Assembly: GCF_030028105.1 (NCBI RefSeq)
Contig: NC_092382.1
Span: 99,588,699-99,652,698, forward strand
Reading direction: 5' to 3'
Source: Mobula birostris
Lineage: Eukaryota
Length of the DNA stretch: 64,000 nucleotides
Within the stretch, counting starts at the first letter, position 1. Every line of letters begins with the position of its first letter. A program made the position numbers and the translations under genes. Positions 26,528 through 62,989 of the stretch are shown here, in pieces. The notes beneath the pieces are model-generated. The model searched no databases. It was not told the DNA's origin and was given only the letters and a program-made list of their open reading frames with translations.

Positions 26528-26543
26528 TGCTGCCACCTCGTGG
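26528..26543 (-). promoter_or_regulatory. CTCF-like motif CCACGAGGTGGCAGCA
   Basis: Close match to the CTCF core, ~100 bp downstream of the RSS of the 26.7-kb V remnant, same strand. Confidence 0.7.
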
Positions 26544-26644: not shown

Positions 26645-26683
26645 CGGTTTTGTAACGGGAGCCCCACGTCCTCAAGCTCTGCG
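26645..26683 (-). other. Damaged 23-RSS (CGCAGAG-23-ACAAAACCG)
   Basis: The invariant CAC is mutated to CGC. The spacer resembles that of the 52-62 kb family. Confidence 0.75.
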
Positions 26684-29229: not shown

Positions 29230-29520
29230 CGATGAGAATATAAATGATAGATCATACATCATTGGCAGATACACGGAGAATGTAAGGAGGCGGATTACAT
29301 GATTTTTTCTTCCGTTATTGGATGTTAGTACGTTTCGGTGGGCAGAATGCTCTGCTGTTTCCGTTTCGCGCTTCACTCGCTGACGAGTTTCGCGGTGCAA
29401 CAGCGCCCTCTTTCGCACAAAGATTTGCCGGAAATACACTTGCAGAAGTGTTTGGTTGATTTAAGCATTCATTCATTTTCCCATGGTTTATTTCCCTGTG
29501 CGTCCGGTGATCATACTACA
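29230..29520. repeat. Diverged duplicated element around a CTCF-like site (paralog at ~33830-34110)
   Basis: Shared blocks taaatgatagatc, ggcagaat, caacagcgccctctttcg, ccggaaatacacttgc and ccatggtttattt occur in the same order in both copies. Confidence 0.75.
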
Positions 29521-32070: not shown

Positions 32071-34596
32071 CTTAATATTATAACACGAAAACAATACTCC
32101 AGATGAGGCCTTACATCACACTCTCAGCCAAATCACATTTACCAGAAACGCTCCCACAAAGAAACAACATCCGTTATGAAAGACCACGAACATCTCGGCC
32201 ATGCTCTCATTTCCTGTCTGCAGTTGTTACAGGAGCCTTTAGTACCACAATATGAGAATCCTATGGGCTCCCTCTCAAGGATTGTACATCTCATGACTAT
32301 TGATTTTTTGATTGATTCCATTGTGATTGATATTATTGATATTTTTTTATGTATTTGGTCAGTTGTGTCTTCTTTTGCACATCGGTTTTAGTTCATTTTT
32401 GCGTGTATTTTTTCACCGATTCCATTGTATTTCTTTCGTCAACCGCGAAAGCCGGCATGAATATCTATCCCAGGTTCTTAATGCACAATCAGAATTTTAA
32501 AAAAAACATACAGTTATGACTAATTACATCCAGACGCCATTTAGATTTTTAAACCCCGCTCTCCAACAAAAACATTACGGTCTTTCTAGCAGTGGAGCAC
32601 CTCTGCTCATAAACACTCCGATATCTTCGAAAACCAAACGCTCCCTCCCGCTTCCGAACCATCATCCGGTTCCGTCCACTTTCAAGCATCGACCGCTACA
32701 AGTATCCACCCACCACCACACCCCCCTCCGCCCAATCTCCTCCGCCAACTCCATCTAAAACACTCGGAGATTGCATGCACTGTCTCGATGGGCACGCACA
32801 CACCTACGTATTCATATGCGTGGATTTAGGAGCGCACCCGGATATGGCCGTGTCATCGAGTTTGGGAGTTTCGGCAAATATCAAAGGTGCTCAGATTTTG
32901 GGCTGTGACGTAGTTCAAGGTTGTATAATTTATACATATTTTGACAATAAATCTAATTTGAAGATTGACTTTTCTAAATGCCATGTAGGTGTCGGCGGAT
33001 ATTGACTATCAACGGGTTTTGGGGGGGTCGGCGGGTTTGTGGGCGTGGGCATTTTTGGCGTGTCCGCGCTGTTCAGGGTATTGGTGATTACTGACAGGGA
33101 CCGGGATTTGGTGCTGAGCAGGTATTACGAGTTGTGAGGATTTGTGGTGCCCACGGATTTGTCGGTGCATACAGATTTGCTGGAATCGGTGGATTTCGGG
33201 TTTTCGTCAGACATGTGGGGCGGGGTTGCACGTGCCTTTGAGGGTAAGCAAATTTGAGGGTATCAGCAACAATTGGCCTGCCACCGAATTACTGGGTGTC
33301 GGCGGGAATGGGGTATAAGCGGATTAGGGGCTGTCCGAAGAACCCGGAGTGGCATCAGATGCGGGGGTGCGCACGGATTTGGGGGTGCCAATGGATTCGG
33401 AGCGTTGGTGGTTTTCGGCGGGTCCAGGGATAATGGGAAGTCACAGGATTTAGGGGTGCGCACGAGTTTGGGTGTGTCAGCTGTTTTGGGGTTTATGGCT
33501 GGGGGTTCGACGGATGTGGTAGTGTCACCAGATTTGGGGGTGCTCGGATTATGGGGCTTTGACGAGTCGCAAAGTTGTATTATTGCTGTCTACTTTGATA
33601 GTTAAAGCAGTTGCCACTTTGAGATCTGAAGATGGGGACGGCAATTTTGCGAAACTTTACTGTCCTTGCAGACTTAAAGTTTGAAAGATTTGACCTGATC
33701 CTTGCTCTGGCGTTATCTGATGTGGAGTTTGTGGATATTATAACAGTTAGATAGATAGAAAGGCATAGTTCAGAGCCACAGAGTAATAAGACAAGTAGGC
33801 GCTAATGCAGATTGATTGAGGGTTCAGAACGTCTATTGACCGAGATACGATAAATGATAGATCGAAAGAGACACGGAGACCGTAACGAGGTAGGTTTCAT
33901 GATTACCTCGTTTGAACTGACATTACTACGTTTGAATAGGCAGAATAGACTGCGGTTCCCGTCTCGGGGTGCACTCTCTGTCGAATCCCGTGGTACAACA
34001 GCGCCCTCTTTCGGGCAAATTGTTTCCGGAAATACACTTGCCGACGTAGTTGATTGGTTGATTCCTTCATTCGCCATTTTACCATGGTTTATTTTCATAT
34101 CGGTCCGGATATAATATTACACACTGAACAAGCAAGAAGGTGATGGATTCCACAGAAACATAACATGCAGAAATCATGTCAATAAATCGGGGTTGAAGGT
34201 GAGTGGTGTGGGTGTTTAAGGGGCCTTTAAAACGGTGGGAGTAACACAGAATATTACCACCGTCAGAAGGACTTCTGGACCGGTACATGTAAAGGAAAGG
34301 TTTTGCTGTAAACACGCGAACTTCTGGCTAATATGATGGGCTTTGATAACACAGTTGGCCTACGCAGAAGAATGGGGCCGAGGGGTTGTATCTGCACCGC
34401 CTGGAACATAACTACAGACAATTACCATTTCTGTCCCAAGCAGACGATCAGATAATGATGTCGTCAGCAGGAGCTCAATCGGCAATTGGTGGATGGACAG
34501 TCTCGACGTCATATCCGGGAACACCCTCGACCGACAGAGCTTAGTTGAAGAAGCGAGTGAGGGGCGTTTGCTGCCGAACAGCGCTGCAGAATCGCG

Positions 34597-40703: not shown

Positions 40704-43352
40704 ACACAAACGTACGTCGGCACCGTACCGTACTAATCAGCGCGTCGCTGCACAGCACCAGCAGCCTGGGTTCCGCTCCTTCGCCGTTTATAAGAAATTC
40801 GTAAGTTCCTCGCAGTGACGGCGTCAGTTCCCTTCGGTGCCCCAACTCCACCCTGGAAGGACGTAAGGGACAGGAGGTTAATTGATAATATTTATTTATC
40901 TGGACGTGGGGGGGGGGGGGATTCACTGGGTTGGACGGTTCTGTTACCATTTTTCTTTCACTTTTCTTTGAATGAAACTGAACTACCTATACGTTGAGAG
41001 ACAAACAAAGCGGCAGAAACTGTGCCCTAGAAACGGACACACAGGTCACACAACGAGAAAAATAACCCCTCATTTCATGTTTTGTCCCGCACATTTGCTC
41101 CGGCGGATACAATGAACATATATCGACCTTGTGTCTTCGCGCACTTCTGGTTTCTGCTCTGAATGCAACGTCATGCAGCGAGGGAGGGATGGGGATGCCA
41201 ATGACAGAATCGGGGACGGGGCGTTGCAAGCCAGACTGTAACCTTATACAGTCATTATATCTGTCCTCACGCTCCGAACAGGCCCTGCTCTTCCTGAAGG
41301 AGAACTTTACGTGAAGGATGCTTTTGTTAATGGCGTTTGTGACCTGCTTGTACAGCAAGGAATATTCAAATCCAATGTTCCCTGCTTCCGTGTTTGCATT
41401 CCTTCTTTCTCATTCTGTCTTATCCACTTTTCCACATTATCTTTACGTCACGTCCACTTCCTTACCCTGTGAGTATCATCTTTATGGACCCCTGTTCTTC
41501 CTCCTGCGTATTTTCCGAATTTGCTCTGCCATTATTTCCGCGCTTGGCCACTTTCAGAACTTATCCTGTCTCATCCTCGCGTTGCCTCGCACATTGCCTC
41601 CAGCTAACTCTCTGCATTTTCGCTCTCCTGTCTTCTCCGTCTCTCGCTCGCCCCACACCGCTCCTGTCTATCCATCGCTCTCAACCTCACCCCCGCTGTT
41701 CCTACCAGCTCAGCTTCGGCGCGTACCCTGCCTCTCCATTTTCCTCTCACCGTCCCCTACTGCTGCCATCTCCACTCTACTTCCTCCCATTTCTTTATTT
41801 ATCTGTCTACCTTTCAATAATTATCCCTCCTCGCTCCTTCCCTCCGCTTCGTGCTTTGACTCGGCACCGCCACACCCTTCCCTCATCCTCCCTATCCATC
41901 TATCTCTATCTATAAACCAGTCTTATCATTCTCCTTATCGATTTCTCCATATCTCTGTCTCATCTCTCCCTGGCGCGCTCTGGTTATTTCTCGATCACGT
42001 TCTGTTTTTCTGTACCTGCCTCTATTACACACAAACATACGGCGGCACCCTCACGTACTAGTCAGCGCGTCGCTACACAGCACCAGAAGCCTGGGTTCCG
42101 TTCCTTCCGCCGCCGATAAGAAATTCGTACGTTCCTCGCAGTGAGGGTGTCAGTTCCCTTCGGTGCCCCAACTCCACCCCGCAAGGACGTACGGGACAGG
42201 AGGTTAATTGGTCACATCTGTGTAATTGGGCGGCGAGGCTTCATTGGGTCGGATGGTTTTGTTAGCGAGTTTTCTATTTATGTTTTGAGTAAAACTGAAA
42301 TGCCTATGCAGAGAGAGAAACAAACAGGCAGAAATCGTGCTCGAGAAACAGACACACAGGTCGCACAACGAGAACAATAACTCTTCATTTCATGTTTTGT
42401 CCCGCACATTTGCTCCGGCGGATACAACGCACGTATGTCGACGTTGTACCTTCGAGCACTTCCGGTTTCTGCTCTGAATGCGACGTCATCCAGCGAGGGA
42501 GGGATGGGGATGCCAGTGACAGAAGCGGGGGCGGGGCGTTGCAAGCCAGACTGTAACATTATACAGTCATTATATCTGTCCTCACGCTCCGAACAGGCCC
42601 TGCTCTTCCTGAAGGAGAACTTTACGTTAAGGATGCTCTTGTTACTGGCGTTTGTGACCTGCTTGTACAGTAAGGAATATTCAAATCCAATGTTCCCTGC
42701 TTCCATGTTTTCATTCTTTCTTTCCCTCATCCTAATTCTGTCTTATCCACGTTTCCACATTATCTTTACGTCACGTCCTCCTCGTTCCCCTGTGAGTATC
42801 ATCTTTATGGACTCCTGTTCTTCCTGCTCCTCATTTTCCGGCCTTGCTCGTCCATAATTTCCGCGCATGGCCTCTTTCAGCACTTATCTACTCTCATCCT
42901 CGCGTTGCCTCGCACGTTCTCTCCAGCTAACTTTCTGCATTTTCGCTCTCCTTTCTTCTCCGTCTCTCGCTCGCTCCACACCGCTCCTGTCCATCCGTCA
43001 CTCCCAACCTCACCCACGCTCTTCCTGCCAGCACAGCTTCGGCGCGTACCCTGCCTCTCCATTCTTCTCTCTCTGTCCCTTATTGCTGCCTTCTCCACTC
43101 CACTTCCTCCCATTTCATTATTTATCTATCTACTTTTCAATAATTTTCCCTCCTCGCTCCTTCCCTCCGCTTCGTCCTTTGACTCCGCACAGCCATACCC
43201 TCCCCTCATCCTCCCTATCCCTCCATCTCTATCTATAAACCAGTCTTATCTATCTCCTTATCGATTTCTCTATATCTCTGTCTCATCTCTCCCTGGCGTG
43301 CTCGGGTTATTTGTCCATCACGTTCTGTTTTTTCTATACCTGCCTCTATTAC
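40704..43352 (+). repeat. Two-copy tandem duplication of a ~1325-bp unit (SINE, V promoter, leader, intron)
   Basis: 40704-42028 and 42029-43352 are collinear throughout, with TAC microhomology at the junction. Confidence 0.9.
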
Positions 43353-43754
43353 TGTCTGGACCTCTCTCCAGCGCACGGAGTCGCTGCCGTTACTGAATGT
43401 ATTTATTTTTCCCCCTCGTTTGTTCTTTAAATCACAAGCCGTGACTTCGACGGTGATCCGCCAGACACTCCACGCTGTTTCCGAGTCCCCCGGCCCGAAA
43501 CAAACTCGTCACTGCACGGTCGAGGGCAGCAGCAGCTACTGATTGTTCTGGTACAGACAATACCCGGGGAAGGATATTGTCGATGGCTGTTTTACTCGAT
43601 GGCTGCTCCAAGCGTGGCGCCGGACGCCGAGGTGGACGGGTTTACAGCCAGTCGACCGAAAAGCAATGAGTTCACTCTGAGCGTCAGCCGCCTGCAGCTG
43701 AACCACTCGGCCACATATTTCATATGGCATTGATAGGAGCCTCGAGCAAAAACC
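42633..43754 (+). pseudogene. V-beta-like (CAWS family) pseudogene: leader 42633-42669, V 43439 to ~43721, orphan nonamer 43746-43754
   Basis: Leader MLLLLAFVTCLY A|GTAAGG. V reads VTSTVIRQT...HCTVEGSSSY*LFWYRQYPGK, frameshift, then AEVDGFTASRPKSNEFTLSVSRLQLNHSATYF. Cys104 codons and heptamer are deleted. TGA at 43540. Confidence 0.88.
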
Positions 43755-47209: not shown

Positions 47210-47793
47210 CGGCGGTAATAAGTATAACCCCGAGACAGCAACTTGTGGAAAAGAGACAGTCACGACTACTGCGGGAATATTTGGCCATAAATGATGGTGC
47301 TGTGATGGAATCGACTGCGAGCCCACTAATCCTAACTATAACCCGCTCCCTGTAAATGCCTGCAAGAAAATGAATCTCTGGGTTGTCTATGGTGCCGTGT
47401 ACGTACTTTGATAGTACATTTATCTTGACTGGGACCTTGACTTTATCAAGGCCTGCAAAAATCTCCGGGAGCGCAGATAAGATGCGTCATCATTATTTTC
47501 CGGGGGTAAGAGGGATTAGCCCCAAATTGCAGAATTTAATATTAAGGGACATCTGTTTAAGCTCAGATGAAGTTAGACAGCTGGAATGAATTGTTGGATG
47601 AAGCAGTGGAGAAGGGCACGTGTACACCATTCGGGCAGGTACACCGATGGTAAAGCTTCAAGGATGTGTTGAGTAAATGGAGGTAAATAGAATTAAAGTA
47701 GACAGAACCATGAGGCACCTAAGTTGCTGGTTAACTTGACTATGAAGATGATCTTCTTTATCTCTATTCAGATCTTGAGGATGATCCGTGAGT

Positions 47794-47809
47794 CCTACAG
47801 GGGGCGCTG
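47794..47809 (+). promoter_or_regulatory. CTCF-like motif CCTACAGGGGGCGCTG
   Basis: Matches the CTCF core. Related + strand motifs at 40333, 44145 and 62607. Confidence 0.65.
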
Positions 47810-48105: not shown

Positions 48106-48324
48106 NNNNNNNNNNNNNNNNNNNNNNNNNNNNNNNNNNNNNNNNNNNNNNNNNNNNNNNNNNNNNNNNNNNNNNNNNNNNNNNNNNNNNNNNNNNNNNN
48201 NNNNNNNNNNNNNNNNNNNNNNNNNNNNNNNNNNNNNNNNNNNNNNNNNNNNNNNNNNNNNNNNNNNNNNNNNNNNNNNNNNNNNNNNNNNNNNNNNNNN
48301 NNNNNNNNNNNNNNNNNNNNNNNN
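48106..48324. other. Assembly gap (219 N) in GATA-type repeat
   Basis: Run of N followed by (GATA)-like repeats. Confidence 1.
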
Positions 48325-52570: not shown

Positions 52571-54202
52571 CATTAAGGTTCAATAGGTTTCTGTTTTACA
52601 GGGGTTCTGCCCACGTACCTGAAACAGTCGCCTTCCTCTCTATCAGTCACAGAGGGAGAGGCAGCCACCGTCTACTCTACGCTGACGAATACGGGCTATA
52701 ATGTTATGTATTGGCACAGACAGCGTTCCGATCGGGCAATGGATGCTCTCTTCTATTCAGCTGTGCATGGTTCCGTTACGAACTACACATCCGATTCCTA
52801 CACAGCGACAACACCCAGCAGCACTCTGCTTAAACTGGAGCTCAGTCGGGCATCGGCCTCCCTGCCACCGTTTACTACTGCGCTTGTAGTAGCGCACAGA
52901 ACCTGAGATAACGAGTCTCCCACTGCAAAAATCTTCCAGCCGATCAGAGGGAAGTTTGAACGTTCCTCTTCCACCGCACGGAGGCAGCACCGAGCTGTAG
53001 TAGACTGCTCCTTTCTATCCCGAACGGGCAGCGCTCGGCTGGCTTTCCGCCGGTGTTTCAGTTTCCTCAGGGATCACAAAGACAAGCGTTCCATTTGGAT
53101 GCGTAACTGCTTCACATCAGCTCTGCATTTGACAGCAAGATACTCCAGGGAGACGTTCAGATGCCCCAGCACGGCGTGGAAACATCTCTCTGTCTGTACA
53201 TCTGGTTAGCTCCGTAAAATAACCAGCGTAATCAAAGATCCCAGCCACCACTCGAGCAGCTTCTCTCTCGTTTGACTTCCGACTCTCAAACAGGCCGTTT
53301 GTACGATCTCAGGCTGCAATAATGTAGACTCTTCCCATCAGAACCTGTCTAATTATGATCTTCGTTCTTTCTTTAGCTAGACACTTGTGGCCATAATAAA
53401 CTAATATAATAATTTACCTTGTTCTCCCTCAATCCACAGTGCGAAGCAATTTGACGCTCTAACTTGCTCTTCAAGTGTAGGTAGGTCAGCAATATTTTTT
53501 TTTTACCGCCGATCGGTGTCCGATGATTTGCGAGAACTCAAAAGTTATGTGTTGCTGCAGAGTTCAGAGTCCGAAGTAAAATCCTAATCAAAACAGGAAC
53601 GTGGCACGAGCTACCCTGAGGTTAAATTTCTGGACAATTACAGCACATACGATGAAAGATAACAATAAAGTCCATGAAAACCCAGGCACAAAGATGGACA
53701 AACAGTATGCAAATAAAGGCAAAATGTGCAAAGACATATTAAGCATAAAACAATAAGTGTGGAAGTAATAAATATTATTGAGATCACAGTGGGTGAAAAT
53801 CTTGAAAAAGATCACCTAGGTTTTCAAATAGTTCAACGTTAAGGTGGGTGAAGTTGTCAACACCAAGCGAAGAGCCCGAACCTGCGGGGAAACGTCACTC
53901 ATCTCAACATTGAACGAAACAAGATGGCGGCTACACGCCGCCTTGCTGTGCGTTATGGCGAAGGGCCATTACTTTCTGCCATAGAAGCAATTCCCCTATC
54001 AGCGAATCCCAAGTAATTCAATTGAATCTCTAATCTCGTAATATATTCGTTTCATTCGGGTGAATTTACCGATTATTTGAAACCTGCTTCCCTTGGACAT
54101 GTGCCTCCCAGCTTGGAATTATCCAGCCCCTTCTGGAGGGGATCTCGACTCTCCTCGCCAGCTTGTCAGCACTGCTTTGAGCTCCAAAGAGGGATATCGC
54201 TG

Positions 54203-54988: not shown

Positions 54989-55282
54989 GGATTCTGACCG
55001 CCTACGTGGAGCAGTCGCTTTCCTCCCTGACAGTCCCGGAGGGAGAGACGGCAACTCTCTCGTGTACGCTGCTGAATACGGTCTATACAAACATGTACTG
55101 GTACCGACAGCGGTCCGGCCGGGCAATAGATGCTCTATTCTATTCTGCTGGGCAAGATTCAGCTATGAATTACACATCTGATTCCTGCGCGGCGACAAGG
55201 CCCAGCAGCACTCTGTTTAAACTGGAGCTGAGACAAGCATCGTCCTCCCACACCGCCGTCTACTTCTGCGCGTGTAATAGCG
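54989..55282 (+). CDS. TRBV: Apparently functional TCR V-beta-like V exon (unit 3)
   Basis: ILTAYVEQSLSSLTVPEGETATLSCTLLNTVYTNMYWYRQ...SHTAVYFCACNS. Acceptor CCTACAG, RSS CACAGAA-23-ACAAAAACT at 55283-55321. Confidence 0.88.
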
Positions 55283-55360
55283 CACAGAACTTGAAATAAC
55301 GAGTCTCCCTGTACAAAAACTGTCGAGCCAATCGCAGCGAGCTTCAGTGATCCTGTTGCG

Positions 55361-55376
55361 CCTCTAGGTGGTAGCA
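55361..55376 (+). promoter_or_regulatory. RSS-proximal CTCF-like motif CCTCTAGGTGGTAGCA
   Basis: 39 bp after the nonamer. Confidence 0.7.
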
Positions 55377-56560
55377 CGCGATTGTCTTTCCCTCTTCTGT
55401 CTCCTGCGGGGAACAGGCCTGCTATCTCAGGTATAACATACAGAAGCATAGCGGCTTGTTATTGGCTCTGCTCTGCAATTAAAGGAAAGAATATCGAGAG
55501 ATGTACAGAGCTGAGTTGATCAGATATCTGTCGACACAGCCCGTTACCTCAGCCAAGTAGCCAGCATAACAAAGGCTCTCTGCTGCTGTTTCCGACTCTT
55601 CTGCGAGGGGATGTTTTGATAATGTGCTCTCCTGACCTTACTATGCAGTTCCCTGTGGTCTTGTTCACCTGCACTGCATTTTTTCTCTGTCACTGTTAAA
55701 CTTTACAGCTGAACCTTGTTCTGCATCAGTGCGCTGTGTCATTATTTGACCGGTGTGAATGAGATGGAGGAGGATTCTTTCACTGAAGCTCGATACATTT
55801 ACGTTGTTCCATCTGAATGCACCGTGTAATAAATTGATCTCTCATCACTGCATAACTGCTTCGGCAGGTCAGTGCACGTTTCTGTTCTCACCAGCATACC
55901 AACTGCCTTCGTTGCCTGCCTCATTGCTCCCGTATCACCATAGCTTCCCCATCAACCCACAACGATTTCCCTGTGATTTCTATTCTGGCTTTGAGCATGA
56001 GTGTGTGTCGGATCATGGTTAACACAAATGCAATATGAGTAATTCAAGAAGATAGGTGTACGGATAGATAGATAGATATCCAGTAAAACAGTCAGGCAAA
56101 CATACAGACCTGGCAGCAAAATATCGTGTGCTGGTGTTCCCCCGGACACAGCCCATGATCTCTTCCTCCTTGAGATGATTTATTCCACTGTCGTCACTGG
56201 TATTTGGGATCATATTACTTAGATTTTCACTGTCGTCCGCCCTTCCTTACATGCCTTTCGTTTGTTCGTACAACTAATGCTCTGTTTTGCTTGCCCTGCG
56301 TTCATCTGCCTCTCAAGCACGTCTGCCTCCCAGCTTCGAATCATATAAACGTATCTGCATGGCATGAACTCATCTCGGGCCTCGTCGTCAGCTTCACCAC
56401 AATGTCAACCGGCCAAAGGGGGCAAGGCGCCGAGGGAGTGCGGTTATTGGCACAGAAGCATCGGTAAACCAGTCCGCTTTTTCAGACCACGCCGATAAAC
56501 TTGAACCTGAGAGCTGATACTGAGCTTCACACGATTACACATAAATATCGTGCCCTGGAG

Positions 56561-56612
56561 ATGATGTTGTGGTGGACGTTTTGCCTCCCGCTGATTGCGG
56601 CGATGTTCCCGA
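56561..56612 (+). pseudogene. Orphan leader exon (unit 4); V exon absent
   Basis: MMLWWTFCLPLIAAMFP A|GTAAGG with homologous promoter and intron start. No V is seen before the next leader at 58137. Confidence 0.8.
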
Positions 56613-57801
56613 GTAAGGTGACATCACAGATGGTGGGGAAGCAGGTGTAAAATGTCCTTTGCAAGCGGAAATAGTGCAGCATCTGACGTGATTAGGCTTT
56701 ATAGATATCCGCGTCATGACGCAAAAGATTTGAGGACTCTCCTTCAACCATCGAGCCTGATGACGAAGTGTCTTATCACTGATAAGCGGTTTCCGCGCAT
56801 GTCAGATTGCCCCAGGGTGAGATAGGGCATTGAATTCACGGATATTCCTGAGTTCCTCTACGATACCTGTAAGAGGAGCTCGGGGGTTTCTCGTTTTTTT
56901 TTTACGAGAGATTATGTGTCAAAAGTAAATGCGGATCAAATGCGAATATGCTCTTCTGCATTTTACCCCAATTCCTCACTTGTTGAATGCATCTCGTGTT
57001 TGTCTAAATTAGGGTACGGATGTGTCGGTGCCATCGTGTTATAGCCGGAGATGTAATTGGGGACAGCTCCCGCGTCGTATTCAATTCTCCACATGTTATG
57101 CGCTTCGAATACCCTCTGACAACCTAGTCCAGGTCCTGGTCTTCACATGTGGCTGAGCGACTATGCCCGGAGAAACTGTCTCTGCTGACATGGGAAGAGA
57201 AGAATGGCGGCTTACTGGCGCCTTAAAACCAGTCGCTTCGGGCAGATGGGGCTAGTCAGCCGCGGTTGGCATTTCATCTTGGGGAAGGAAAACTCTGATG
57301 TCAAACCTCCGCTGCTTTGCGGCTGTACCCATCCATGGGGAGGGTTTCAGTAGTGATTCCCCGGGGACAAATCCGGAGCTGCAGCCCCGAAATTAATCCT
57401 CTGTCGAATTTAAAGTTGACTGGCAGCTCCTGGGACGCCGGAGGTACCGAAATATACCGGTCTCTGTGGGGAAACTTGCTACATGGGCAACAACTTGCTC
57501 TCCATAACATACTGACCGGGGTTGCGTGTAGAGATAGAGCATAGAACATAGAACATAGAATAGTACAGCACAGTACAGGCCCTTCGGCCCACAATGTTGT
57601 GCCGACCCTCAAACCCTGCCTCCTATATAAGCCCCCAACTTAGATTCCTCCATATGCCTGTCTATGACGCAGCACCCATAGTCGACCCTGTACGAACGGG
57701 GTCTCGCTCTCTGACTCACTCGCCCTGCGTGGATGCTACCGGACCTTCTGGAGTCCTCCAGCATTTACGTCTTTTGATAGATAGATGAAGAGGGAGAGTA
57801 T

Positions 57802-57845
<44 letters not shown>

Positions 57846-58136
57846 TGAGAGAGATCTGAAGATTTTGTGTTTTTTTTCATTGGTGGTAGATGCTGTAGGT
57901 CTGATGCGTTAACCAATTGTATTTCCTATGAATGTTTGTTCAACTGTAACCGAAACTTTCGTTCGATATCGGCTTCTGAACTGTAATAACCTTCGTGGTA
58001 AGACGCGCAGGAAGTGACGCCTTCAACAAAGGGACAATGGGATTTCCGTAATCAGATAGGAGACAACGCGTTTCTTCTGAATACCGGCATTGCGCTGCAC
58101 TCGATGACAAAGTGAGCCGGTATCTCTTTAGAGTGG

Positions 58137-58188
58137 ATGATGGCTTGTGGAACGCCTTGCATCCTCCTGATTTTGCCGTTGATACCAA
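58137..58188 (+). CDS. TRBV: Leader exon, unit 5
   Basis: MMACGTPCILLILPLIP A|GTAAGT, 52 nt, phase 1. Confidence 0.85.
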
Positions 58189-58732
58189 GTAAGTCAAACC
58201 ATCACAGATCCACGGAAAGCGGTGTGGTTTTCCTGTTAGACTTACGCAGTCCGGCATTTTCCTTCCTTCAGCTCGGTAGAGGGTATCAAATTTGAAATCC
58301 CCTCCGAAGCTCATGTTCCAAAATGGAAAGATCAGACCACTGATGACAGCCGGCACGTTGGGTTTCGGAATTGAAATGACGTCCTCTCCAATGGACGGGA
58401 CTGAACGTGGAAGAGGGGACATGTATGTCTGTGCTGCACTGAGGGGGCTGAGGTACTGATACTAAATACGGATCAAATGCCAGCAAGCTGTCCAGTTTTC
58501 CGGTTCAGTTCCCCAATCTGGTCCAATGGCGGCTGATATGGCCCACGGAGCCGTACACCACTGTGACATTTCTCGCACGTTACTCACTAGTGATTGGATA
58601 TCATCCCGTTGGGTTTTGCTGAGGGTGGCCAAAGGATTTAAGATACGCGGGTTCCTTCTTTTTGAACATTTTAAACAATATCTGGTTGACTATTGAGAGC
58701 AAGTAGAGACTGATTGAATTCCTTTCTTGCAG

Positions 58733-59026
58733 CGATTCTGGCGGCTTACGTGCAGCAGTCGTCTTCCTCCCTGTCAATTGGAGAGGGAGAGTCGGCCAGC
58801 ATCTCGTGTACGCTGCTAAATACGGGATATCCAGCCATGCTTTGGTATAGGCAGCGATCCGATCGGACAATGGATGCTCTCTTCTATTCTGCTGGGCAAG
58901 GTCAGTCTATGAACTACACATCGGATTCCTACACGGCGACAAGGCCCAGCAGCACTCTGTTTAAATTGGAACTGGGCCGGGCATCGGCCTCCCACGACGC
59001 CGTCTACTACTGCGCTTGTAGTAGCG
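58733..59026 (+). CDS. TRBV: Apparently functional TCR V-beta-like V exon (unit 5)
   Basis: ILAAYVQQSSSSLSIGEGESASISCTLLNTGYPAMLWYRQ...SHDAVYYCACSS. Acceptor TTGCAG, RSS CACAGAG-23-ACAAAAACC at 59027-59065. Confidence 0.9.
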
Positions 59027-59104
59027 CACAGAGCTTCAGATACCGAGTCTCCCACTACAAAAACCCTGCAGCTGATTGCAGGCAGGTTCAGAGTTCCTTT
59101 TGTA

Positions 59105-59120
59105 CCAGCAGGTGGCAGCA
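59105..59120 (+). promoter_or_regulatory. RSS-proximal CTCF-like motif CCAGCAGGTGGCAGCA
   Basis: Close match to the CTCF core, 39 bp after the nonamer. Confidence 0.8.
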
Positions 59121-60015
59121 CAGGACTGTGTTTGGCAGCCACTTGTACTGTCGCGGACGGGGAAAACCTGGCTGGCGTTCTCTCCTGCTCCAATAACGGT
59201 CGATATCACCAGGACAAGAATTCTACCTGATATGGCAACTGCTCTACAGTTACCAGCAAGAAACTCCAGAAAACAATACGTCCGCACAGCTCAGCGGATC
59301 TTGGAAACGTCCCCTCGCTAACATCTCCTTCTGTCAGAAGAACAAAGACGCCAGCCACCAGTCGGTCAGAAGACTCAAGATCTGAATATACATACTAACA
59401 GTCGCAAAGCAAACCTTTTCTCCCGCTGTTATTCAACTCTCGAGTGGCCCATTTTCTACGGTGCGATGGTACAGAAATGTGGGCCGCTGACGTCACAATG
59501 AACCTCGTTTTGGTCCTGTACGTCAGTTCTGCTTTCTCTCGGCAGCTCTTAAACTTTATTGTCGTGCCTTATTCTACATCAGTGCACCGTGTACTGATTG
59601 TATATCTGTGAACAAGCTTATCACTGCATCTTGTTACAGGTGACAGTAGCAAGTCAATGTCAATACCAGCACCGATACCCTCCAGAGCTGCTGACTGACC
59701 CGCTAAGTTTCTGCACTAAGTTGACGGTGACACCAAACTGAGTGGAAAAGCAAATTGTCACGGCTGAACACATGAAGCCACACCCCTCAACCGTACGTTA
59801 GAATAATACCGAATATCTTAGTCATCACCGCGCTCTTTACGAGCAATGTGCTATGAAGTGGGAGACCGTGGTCTACCCAGGACCATGATTAATCCTGCTA
59901 ATTGTTTCTACAGAAGTGTTTTCCCTTTGTTTTATTCTTGGCAGTGTCTTTCCGAAACATTTTACCCCAGCCATTTCCAATCGTCATTAGAGATGTTCTG
60001 CCCGATATTAGTGGT

Positions 60016-60188
60016 TGTTCAAATAGGACTGAAAGTGGAACCATCTACCGCCTGTTCCCAAGGGTTCACGGGACCCCGATCGGGAATCCATTCAGTTGCG
60101 ACACCTTGCCTAAGGGTGACCCGTATCCTAGCGGAGGGAAGGAGCGCCTTAGACCTCCTTCGGAAGAGACCCACCTCCTCTCGTCACC
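60016..60188. repeat. ~170-bp element duplicated at 61973-62145
   Basis: First ~105 bp are nearly identical between copies. Probably a dispersed repeat fragment. Confidence 0.85.
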
Positions 60189-60677
60189 CACAGTACCGCG
60201 GTATCATGTGGAACGCACGATGGAGTTAAACAAGAGGCCGCGGGATAACAGAACCGGATCGGTTGATGCGAATGGAAGCAGTCGCGCTTGATGGTATTGT
60301 GCGATCAGGCGTGGATCAAACAGGCCGCTTGCTTTGAGGTTATGGCGAAGTGGGGAAGCCTTTCTGGCATCGATGTGTTAACTGGTTGAAGCTCTATTCT
60401 GTTTGCATAGTCCCTGCCGTGGGGTACATTGACCAATCATTTTAAAACGGCTTACCACGAGTGTACGCCTCTCAGTTTCTAATTTGTTTTGCATGAACCC
60501 ATCTCGGGCCTTGTCGTCAGTTCCACGAAAATGAAAAACGACCCAGGCGGAAGTGACGTAATCACGACAAAGACAACGGGAATCTAGTTCCTTTATTAGA
60601 CTAGACAGATAGACTTCCCTGAGAGCTGGTTCTGAGCTTCACTCGATCCACACAGAGGAAGAATCCTTATCCTGCAG

Positions 60678-61574
60678 ATGGTGGTGCGGAGGACAATTTC
60701 CTTGCCGCTGATCGTGGCCATGATCCCACGTAAGTAAAATTCACAGATCTCGGGGAAAGGGGTGTTGAACGACCTTTGTGTAACGACATGGTTCAGCATT
60801 GGACATGGTTACGCTTGGTAGATTTTCTCGAAAGAGGCCGAAGATTTGATGCCAACTTGGCAACTCATGAGCCGAATGAGAAAGCACCTTCCACTGATAA
60901 GCTTTCCCGCGCTGGTCGAACTGACCTAGTTGACATTGCGCGCTTCCTTCAGTTCCGCTAAGCCTGGAAGATGATTTCGGGATATCTCCGGGGATGAGTG
61001 GGGTTTTGCGTCAAAACTGAACGCGGACCAAGTGAGATTTGTACGATATTTAACCTCAGAATCAAAGCGTTTCGAAGAATCTCATTTTGTCTGAATTGGA
61101 GTACGTGTGTGTCAGGACGGTGCATCGCGCCTATTGCACGTCGCAGAGTAGTGCCAACCTTCGTGTTAACCTGAGAGTGGACGGCATATTTCGGGAACGC
61201 CAGCCACTTCCTTCTGTCTAGTTTACGCGCGCGCTGATCAGCAACTGAGGGACATTGGAGATTAATCGATTTTCTGCTTTACAAGGATTCTGGGCGCTTT
61301 CGTCGAGCAGTCGCCTTCCTCCTTGTCAGTCGGAGAGGGTGAGACGGCCAGTGTCTCGTGTACGCTGTTGAAAACGGACTATACACGCATGCATTGGTAC
61401 AGGCAGCGGTCCGACCAGGCAATAGATTGTCTCTTCTATTTTTTTTGTCAAGGTTTGGTTACGAACTACACATCCGATTCCTACACGGCCACAAGACCCA
61501 GCAGCAGTTAAAACTGGAGCTGAGAAAAGCATCGCTCTCCCACTCTGCCATCTACTATTGCGCTTCCAGTAGCG
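60678..61574 (+). pseudogene. Unit 6 V-beta-like pseudogene: leader 60678-60729, V 61285-61574 ending YYCASS
   Basis: Leader MVVRRTISLPLIVAMIP. The acceptor AG is changed to AA, and a 4-nt deletion gives TAA at ~61509. RSS CACAGAA-23-ACAAAAACC at 61575-61613 is intact. Confidence 0.9.
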
Positions 61575-61652
61575 CACAGAACTTCAGATAACGAGTCTCC
61601 CACTACAAAAACCTTCCGGCCGGACGCAGGGAGGTTTCGCGGTTCTGTTGCA

Positions 61653-61668
61653 CCACTAGGTGGCAGCA
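61653..61668 (+). promoter_or_regulatory. RSS-proximal CTCF-like motif CCACTAGGTGGCAGCA
   Basis: Close match to the CTCF core, 39 bp after the nonamer. Confidence 0.8.
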
Positions 61669-62989
61669 CAGGATTGTGTTTGACTGTTCCTTTCTGTCAC
61701 GAACCAGCAACCTTCAGCTGGTTATTTTAAGATGCCGCAGCTGCCTCAGATATCACAAAGACAAGAATTGCATTAAGACGTGTAACTGCTCGATGTGGAA
61801 AATGCACTGCAATTGAAGGCAATAAAAAACCGCAGAGAGACGTGCACCTGTCTCAGCATATCGTGCATACCTGCTACGCGCCTATCCATCTCGATAGCTC
61901 AGTAGGGCAACGAGCATAACCAAAGATCCCATCCACCACTCGAGCAGCTTTTCACCCGCTGTTACAGGACTCTGTTCAAATAGGACTGAAAGTGGAACCA
62001 TCTACCGCCTGTTCCCAAGGGTTCACGGGACCCCGATCGGGAATCCATTCAGTTGTGACACCTTGCCTAAGGGTGACCTGCATGCTAGCGGAGTGAAGTA
62101 GCGCCTTGGACCTCCGTCGGTAGAGACCAGTCTCCGCTCGTCACCAACATTACCCCAGTATAATGTGAAAGTTAAAACGTCGTTAAAGAAGAAGCCGCCG
62201 GATGACAATATCAGATCTGTTGCTGCACTGAGATAAGTATCTACAAGTGTGGAGTTAAGTTTTCTCGGGTCATGTACTCTGTTAAAAATGAATAATCTAT
62301 GGTAGTTGTCTTTAAGCTTTATAGATGAACGCAGGAACAGACAGATGACATCCAACATAGCCGTATGTCAATGGGAGAAGAATTACAGTCGGCCGTAGTT
62401 AGGTGGAATTGTGGAGATAATGTGAACCACTTTCAATCCTAAACGGACCTCGCATGACTTAGGGCAGTTCGCACTTACGATTGCAAGGGCCCATGACTTT
62501 ATCATACGGTTCTCTGGACCATGAACAGAATGCATGCAGATTGATGGCTGTGTGTGAACCTGTCCTTCTTTCTCTATATTCAGATTTCGCCAGTGATTCC
62601 GAGTCTGCTGCAGGGGGCGCTGTTGGACCATGAGGCACCAAATGTGCCGATCCGTCTGCCAGCAGAACAGCTGCATTTTGACAGGACTCTGAGCTGTAGG
62701 GTCGCTAACCCTTTCCTGTCACCAGACTCGAGGCTGTCATTCACAAGATTTCTTGTGGTGCCAGCTGTTCCGCCCTGACTGCAATTCAACCATTGGTCTT
62801 TTGCCTAGGACGACGTGGAATTCATCGCTCAAACTCCACGATCCTATACCGTGAAAATGACTCGGCAATTCCTTCCACTGCTACCTCGAAACCTATTTCT
62901 ATTTCAAAAATTATGTCAACGTGTAAAGAATAATTCAAGTAGATAGAGAGTGATAGATAGCCAACAAAATGGGGAGATAGACAGACAGT

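Follow-up and report, generated by a model that had tools for sequence, protein, structure and literature searches.

V segments, recombination signals and CTCF-type motifs

The window analysed here, a stretch of 64,000 nucleotides of Mobula birostris contig NC_092382.1, is part of a T-cell receptor beta (TCR-beta) variable (V) segment array, in which CTCF-type motifs lie behind the recombination signal sequences (RSSs) of one V family. Four V segments on the forward strand, at 52.9, 55.3, 59.0 and 61.6 kb (V52.9, V55.3, V59.0 and V61.6), are tandem duplicates, their units spaced 2.4-3.7 kb apart and alignable end to end. They belong to a single family in which the V exon ends with CACS(S), and a fifth member of this CACS family, badly decayed, is present at 26.7 kb on the reverse strand. 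The locus was assigned to TCR-beta because the closest proteins in an exhaustive search of representative proteins came from sawfish (a TCR-beta chain, 61% identity), nurse shark (a TCR-beta cDNA, 57%) and whale shark (a V, 56%); these matches also fit a batoid source. Further homologue searches, in which the V domains of Pristis and whale shark and the V exon of the ray served as queries, added no new relatives. The V exons, the RSSs with 23 bp spacers (23-RSSs) and the CTCF-type motifs, the latter with their scores in bits against a CTCF position weight matrix (PWM), are the following:

54989..55282, forward strand: V exon of V55.3, a CACS-family TCR-beta V with an open frame; leader ATG at about 54331, GTAAGT donor
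55283..55321, forward strand: 23-RSS of V55.3; heptamer CACAGAA, 23 bp spacer, nonamer ACAAAAACT
55361..55376, forward strand: CTCF-type motif CCTCTAGGTGGTAGCA behind V55.3, 39 bp after the nonamer; PWM 13.9, a weaker copy
58742..59026, forward strand: V exon of V59.0, open frame, start approximate; leader ATG at 58137, GTAAGT donor
59027..59065, forward strand: 23-RSS of V59.0; heptamer CACAGAG, 23 bp spacer, nonamer ACAAAAACC
59105..59120, forward strand: CTCF-type motif CCAGCAGGTGGCAGCA behind V59.0, 39 bp after the nonamer; PWM 19.8, the best of the window
61295..61574, forward strand: V exon of V61.6, start approximate; a 4-bp deletion near 61480 shifts the frame
61575..61613, forward strand: 23-RSS of V61.6; heptamer CACAGAA, 23 bp spacer, nonamer ACAAAAACC
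61653..61668, forward strand: CTCF-type motif CCACTAGGTGGCAGCA behind V61.6, 39 bp after the nonamer; PWM 19.7
52895..52933, forward strand: 23-RSS of the pseudogene V52.9; heptamer CACAGAA, 23 bp spacer, nonamer GCAAAAATC
52974..52989, forward strand: decayed motif copy CCGCACGGAGGCAGCA behind V52.9, 40 bp after the nonamer; PWM 8.3
26645..26683, reverse strand: degenerate RSS of the decayed CACS-family V; heptamer CGCAGAG at 26683, 23 bp spacer, nonamer ACAAAACCG
26528..26543, reverse strand: CTCF-type motif CCACGAGGTGGCAGCA in V sense, 101 bp after the nonamer; PWM 18.2

In both V55.3 and V59.0 the V exon is open, the leader exon contains an ATG and ends in a GTAAGT donor, and the 23-RSS is usable. 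V61.6 is probably a pseudogene, and V52.9 (52600-52894) is a pseudogene carrying a frameshift and a change of Cys23 to Tyr. Among the public runs found, those guessed to be RNA were tiny and contained almost nothing of the sequence, the word share with the V59.0 exon being 7% at best, in one such library; the others were DNA.

All five motifs read in the sense of their V segments. The offset between nonamer and motif was exactly 39 bp behind V55.3, V59.0 and V61.6, the nonamers of which end at 55321, 59065 and 61613, just as an earlier, sequence-only reading of the window had claimed, and 40 bp in the decayed copy behind V52.9, which that reading had also placed correctly at 52974. Its claim of a further, minus-strand copy behind the 26.7-kb V held as regards the presence of the motif and its V sense, but not as regards the fixed spacing, the distance there being 101 bp instead of 39 bp, probably because insertions of about 61 bp have lengthened the linker. 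The insertions were located by pairwise alignment, and the bases directly before the motif still resemble those of the other copies. MAFFT instead paired this motif with a degenerate stretch that lies some 60 bp downstream of the motif in the other copies. The motif as a separate second site was also considered and set aside, the lengthened linker being preferred on the basis of the pairwise alignment. Despite the decay of its V exon and RSS, the motif at 26528 (reverse strand) is identical to the one at 61653 in 15 of the 16 positions.

The pattern CCNNNAGGTGGNAGCA was matched four times in the window (55361, 59105 and 61653 on the forward strand and 26528 on the reverse), against 0.25 matches expected from dinucleotide shuffles. 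The PWM was built of the JASPAR MA0139.1 counts, with column sums that are self-consistent. In the scan with this matrix, which the sequence-only reading had proposed, the three best matches of the whole window were the RSS-associated sites at 59105, 61653 and 26528; these alone reached at least 18 bits, a level at which 0.05 matches were expected according to a Markov simulation. A search with the literature consensus CCASYAGRKGGCRS (quoted in PMC6746451), which is independent of the PWM, found perfect matches in the window only at 59105 and 61653, with one mismatch at 26530 (reverse strand) and two in the 55361 copy. That the differences between the copies stay within the CTCF consensus, as had been suggested, was thus true of the copies at 59105, 61653 and 26528 but not of the copy at 55361, in which two moderately constrained positions have changed.

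The window as a whole included 12 PWM matches of at least 13 bits, an approximately 8-fold enrichment over the 1.5 expected. Ten of the 12 were on the forward strand, as are most V segments in the window. The match at 60668 simply reflects the region around the leader ATG of V61.6. Another block of conserved, CTCF-like sequence, AGRGGGCGCTGTTGNACC, was present at 29401-29419 and 33999-34017 on the reverse strand and at 47791-47809 and 62604-62622 on the forward strand, with no adjoining RSS. This block of about 20 nt is the sole common part of two pairs of otherwise unalignable sequences, and at two of the sites a leader-like open frame with an ATG follows about 110 nt after it. The blocks were tried as promoter sites, but no V exon was found behind them, and one of the sites enters an N gap (48106-48324). 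Possibly they are what is left of CTCF sites of the promoter type.

The window-wide enrichment, the strand bias of 10:2 and the four blocks away from any RSS would be expected if the motifs bind CTCF as part of a general architecture of the V array, forming sub-domain boundaries, insulating adjoining V units or the germline transcription of these, or loading and anchoring cohesin, and do not raise the use of the adjacent V. Strong copies also remain behind the frameshifted V61.6 and the badly decayed 26.7-kb V, and in the mouse most CTCF-binding elements (CBEs) of the Tcrb V region do not adjoin an RSS (PMC5859386, Table 2). On the other hand, the decayed motif at 52974 does follow a pseudogene, and a fixed distance of 38-40 bp from the RSS in both ray and shark (see below) would be difficult to account for if proximity to the RSS were of no importance. 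The architectural explanation is considered unlikely, though the least so of the three alternatives discussed here.

Conservation of the motif in the ray and in other vertebrates

Among the three copies with an intact motif, pairwise agreement was not uniform along the V unit. Pairwise identity was 0.79 in the V exon, 0.90 in the heptamer, 0.86 in the spacer and 0.93 in the nonamer, fell to 0.63 in the 39-bp linker, rose to 0.83 in the motif and fell again to 0.58 in the next 40 bp and to about 0.4 further downstream. Since the identity dips between the RSS and the motif, the motif forms an island of conservation and not the tail of a gradient extending from the V. Within about 330 bp of 3' flank, all the best-conserved windows of 16 nt overlapped the motif, and the window of the motif itself ranked first. 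Variable columns made up 4 of the 16 in the motif and 47 of the 79 in the flanks (Fisher p = 0.012), or p = 0.067 when the motif was compared with the linker alone. The earlier statement that the flanks vary more than the motif is thereby upheld, and equal conservation of the flanks, which would have spoken against it, was not found.

These figures bear on a second alternative, according to which the motif is functionless: a single copy in the ancestral duplication unit would have been propagated passively as the V-RSS unit underwent tandem duplication and gene conversion, so that paralogy alone accounts for both spacing and similarity. The V units are indeed tandem duplicates 2.4-3.7 kb apart that can be aligned throughout, the copies available number just three or four, one motif has decayed, and the comparison of motif with linker alone is marginal. 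The less conserved linker between the RSS and the motif is, however, at odds with this explanation, as is the survival of a near-perfect copy at 26.7 kb beside a decayed V exon and RSS; moreover, a match of 18-20 bits is rare by chance.

In the whale shark (locus L001), all three CACS-family V segments had a CTCF-like motif in V sense, at +38 bp from the nonamer. The comparison with a shark, which the sequence-only reading had called for, thus placed the motif at the same position and yielded a peak of ray-shark identity over it. The whale-shark motifs CCAGCAGGTGGGGTTA, CCAGCTGGTGGAGACA and CCAACAGATGGGGCCA scored 11.6-12.6 bits. In a joint alignment, ray-shark identity was 0.96 in the nonamer, 0.44 in the spacer and 0.50 in the linker, peaked at 0.64-0.70 over CACCAGCAGGTGG, and dropped to 0.16 beyond about 30 bp past the motif. 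Identity exceeded the shuffle null in the spacer, the linker and the motif, with the largest excess in the motif (0.64 against 0.43), and did not exceed it further downstream. Four of the five most informative CTCF positions were invariant in all seven ray and shark copies, in which column conservation also correlated with the information content of the PWM (rho 0.45, p = 0.05). That the offset is shared with the whale shark, though the sequence from 30 bp onward can no longer be aligned, is a further point against a functionless motif.

The whale-shark copies also give some ground for a third alternative, in which the conserved sequence is the site of another factor: an E-box (CANNTG) bound by an E-protein (E2A/HEB), a site of another zinc-finger protein, or a composite accessibility module formed by the whole conserved block, which extends for about 60 bp beyond the nonamer. 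An E-box is retained in each whale-shark copy (CAGGTG, CAGCTG and CAGATG), while constrained CTCF positions are broken. The 3' half of the CTCF core is not common to ray and shark, and the conservation between the two also takes in GTTCAG of the linker and GATTG 8 nt after the core. The ray copies, however, point in another direction. Three of the four strong ones are not E-boxes (TAGGTG, GAGGTG), CANNTG being found only at 59105. The ray copies also agree with the CTCF consensus of 14 positions throughout or in all but one, and the agreement extends to the GGCAG of the 3' half, which would be dispensable for an E-box. In addition, the invariant columns are the high-information positions of CTCF. 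A site of another factor is on these grounds regarded as improbable.

The blocks common to ray and whale shark beside the core are GTTCAG(A/G).TTC, about 8-20 nt upstream, and GATTG, 8 nt downstream. In the V59.0 unit they are located at 59085-59096 and 59128-59132, respectively, and they occupy equivalent places in the other copies. They might be upstream and downstream modules of a CTCF site or the site of a second factor.

The motif was not common to all V families. CAWS-family V segments had no CTCF-grade motif within 220 bp of the RSS, either in the ray (45701 and 23289, both on the reverse strand) or in the bamboo shark (loci L002 and L003; about nine copies). Judged from these sequences, the presence and absence of the putative element are family-specific and stable. 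The CACS V family itself (YVEQ...MYWYRQ...ALFYS...NYT...CACS) is common to sharks, rays, turtles, alligator and newt. Its sauropsid orthologues, one from turtle and three from alligator, also lacked a CTCF-grade motif within 220 bp of the RSS, the best score being 4.5 bits (alligator L004:10805, L008:7890 and L008:10446; turtle L006:3823), and no such RSS-adjacent CTCF motif was present in the one teleost V array examined. Within the species sampled, the predicted element is confined to cartilaginous-fish members of one V family, and on this sample a gain in the cartilaginous-fish lineage and a loss in the sauropsids are indistinguishable. The sauropsid orthologues without the motif are what a functionless motif would allow for; taken together with the conservation island and the shared offset in the shark, that explanation nevertheless appears distinctly improbable, no less so than the site of another factor and if anything slightly more.

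Comparison with known loci and the proposed loop-anchor role

RSS-associated CTCF sites are known from the V segments (VH) of the mammalian immunoglobulin heavy chain (IgH) locus. In the mouse they lie 17-19 bp after the RSS, whereas in human the distance from the nonamer is either 19 or 48 bp. Of the mouse VH CTCF sites, more than 98% have one orientation, and they are conserved above their flanks (PMC6746451). According to Jain et al. (2018), as reviewed in PMC6439775, mutation of the VH81X CBE lowers the use of VH81X, and CBEs control the use of the adjacent VH. The ray locus shares with mouse and human IgH (Ciccone et al. 2019, PMC6746451) a CTCF core at a fixed short distance 3' of the nonamer of the V 23-RSS, one orientation relative to V transcription, conservation of the motif above the surrounding DNA, and restriction to certain V families. 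The mouse VH sub-consensus GACCAGCAGGGGGC is also similar to the ray (C)ACCAGCAGGTGGC. The differences are that the ray locus is a TCR-beta locus of a cartilaginous fish, that the distance is 39 bp and not 17-19 bp as in mouse or 19 or 48 bp as in human, and that the ray site is a predicted one.

As to the type of locus, the nearest comparison is mouse Tcrb. There loop extrusion is anchored by a CBE immediately 3' of Trbv1, without which Trbv1 does not recombine normally (PMC10772921; bioRxiv 10.1101/2024.10.13.618029), and the CBEs of the V region all face the recombination centre, two of the 18 being near an RSS (Loguercio et al. 2018, PMC5859386, Table 2). The ray array resembles mouse Tcrb (Allyn et al. 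2024, PMC10772921) in the locus type, in (for the ray, putative) V-beta CBEs that point in one direction, and in a site just 3' of a V, which at Trbv1 supports the recombination of the adjoining segment. Several of the mouse Tcrb CBEs are, however, at promoters and several V segments have none, whereas the ray has the motif at one fixed offset behind the RSS throughout a whole V family.

A third comparison is with two-part CTCF sites, in which an upstream motif is bound by zinc fingers 9-11 (PMC12885311, PMC5504073). The ray and shark copies have a GTTCAG.GTTCC-like block 6-9 bp upstream of the core that partly resembles CTGCAGTTCC of those sites, with only 6-7 of the 10 positions matching. 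The best CTGCAGTTCC-like matches (6-7 of 10, at gaps of 2-9 bp) averaged 6.1 against a null of 5.35 from shuffled linkers, and the copies compared are homologous and not independent.

The mammalian motif is a reasonable model for the ray, since CTCF recognises one and the same motif in lamprey, chicken and human (PMC5504073) and signatures of loop extrusion have been reported from the little skate (bioRxiv 10.64898/2026.10.19.759930). As far as the DNA itself allows such a judgement, the candidate element matches the mammalian IgH RSS-associated CTCF elements in position, direction, motif type and conservation, and the feature is described here as a putative IgH-type RSS-associated CTCF element in a cartilaginous-fish TCR-beta V family, with CTCF binding predicted. 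By analogy to mouse Igh and mouse Trbv1 only, CTCF would occupy the motifs and promote the use of the V segments during cohesin/RAG scanning. In full, the proposal is of an RSS-associated CTCF loop-anchor element, in V sense and 39 bp 3' of the 23-RSS, that is kept by selection and holds the RSS at a point where cohesin stalls; arguing from the mammalian loci, its chance of being correct is put at about even.

The proposed mechanism would be as follows. CTCF on the motif would have its N-terminus toward the RSS-distal side. Zinc finger 7 of CTCF contacts the CCA end of the core (PMC12885311), and a motif in V sense would therefore turn the N-terminus away from the RSS, toward downstream; this would be the right direction if the cluster of diversity, joining and constant (D-J-C) segments lies downstream. 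As cohesin extrudes the chromatin that separates the V array from the D-J-C recombination centre, the bound CTCF would stall it, the V motifs presumably being convergent with CBEs at that centre. The adjoining RSS would then be held at the base of the loop, with a greater chance of synapsis with a RAG-bound D-J.

Several observations weigh against this proposal. The statistics within the window are built on three or four paralogs only, and the D-J-C cluster with its CBEs is outside the window. The strength of the motif does not track the intactness of the V: of the intact segments V55.3 has a weak motif (13.9 bits) and V59.0 a strong one, the frameshifted V61.6 and the badly decayed 26.7-kb V both have a strong motif, and the pseudogene V52.9 has a decayed one. 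The whale-shark copies have G or A for C at the constrained core position 12, in one copy A is replaced by T at core position 6, and all three are also E-boxes. With deviations in the 3' half and an E-box in each of the shark copies, it is less certain for the shark than for the ray which factor would bind. The absence of a CTCF-grade motif from the four sauropsid CACS orthologues counts on the same side.

No link between genome folding and the choice of V genes is better understood than the one provided by CTCF sites next to an RSS, and this link has been worked out in mouse and human IgH. In the literature searched, no paper was found describing CTCF sites at the recombination signals of shark or ray TCR loci. 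The same layout in a ray TCR-beta locus, common to a shark, suggests that the coupling of RSS and loop anchor is old or easily re-evolved, and shows that the layout is not peculiar to antibody heavy chains. A rather doubtful extension of the proposal is that an RSS-coupled CTCF site is ancestral to the jawed-vertebrate V unit. The choice of V by loop extrusion would then predate the shark-ray split and perhaps that between cartilaginous and bony fishes, and the site would have been lost in the sauropsid CACS family and kept or re-made in mammalian IgH. If so, RSS and CBE would have travelled together as one module. The closely related V segments with strong, weak and decayed sites form a natural series for testing the mouse model in a distant lineage.

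Other features of the window

Another V remnant, with an in-frame stop inside, was present near 43549 on the forward strand. At 41040 and 42355, also on the forward strand, two repeat copies about 1.3 kb apart each end with an RSS-like sequence, CACAGGT-12-A(A/C)AATAAC (heptamer, 12 bp spacer, nonamer), with no obvious J-like or D-like coding sequence beside it. Between the V units, the regions 56950-57750 and 59550-60350 showed very high contig depth in four runs of related species, and they are therefore taken to be high-copy repeats (transposable elements).

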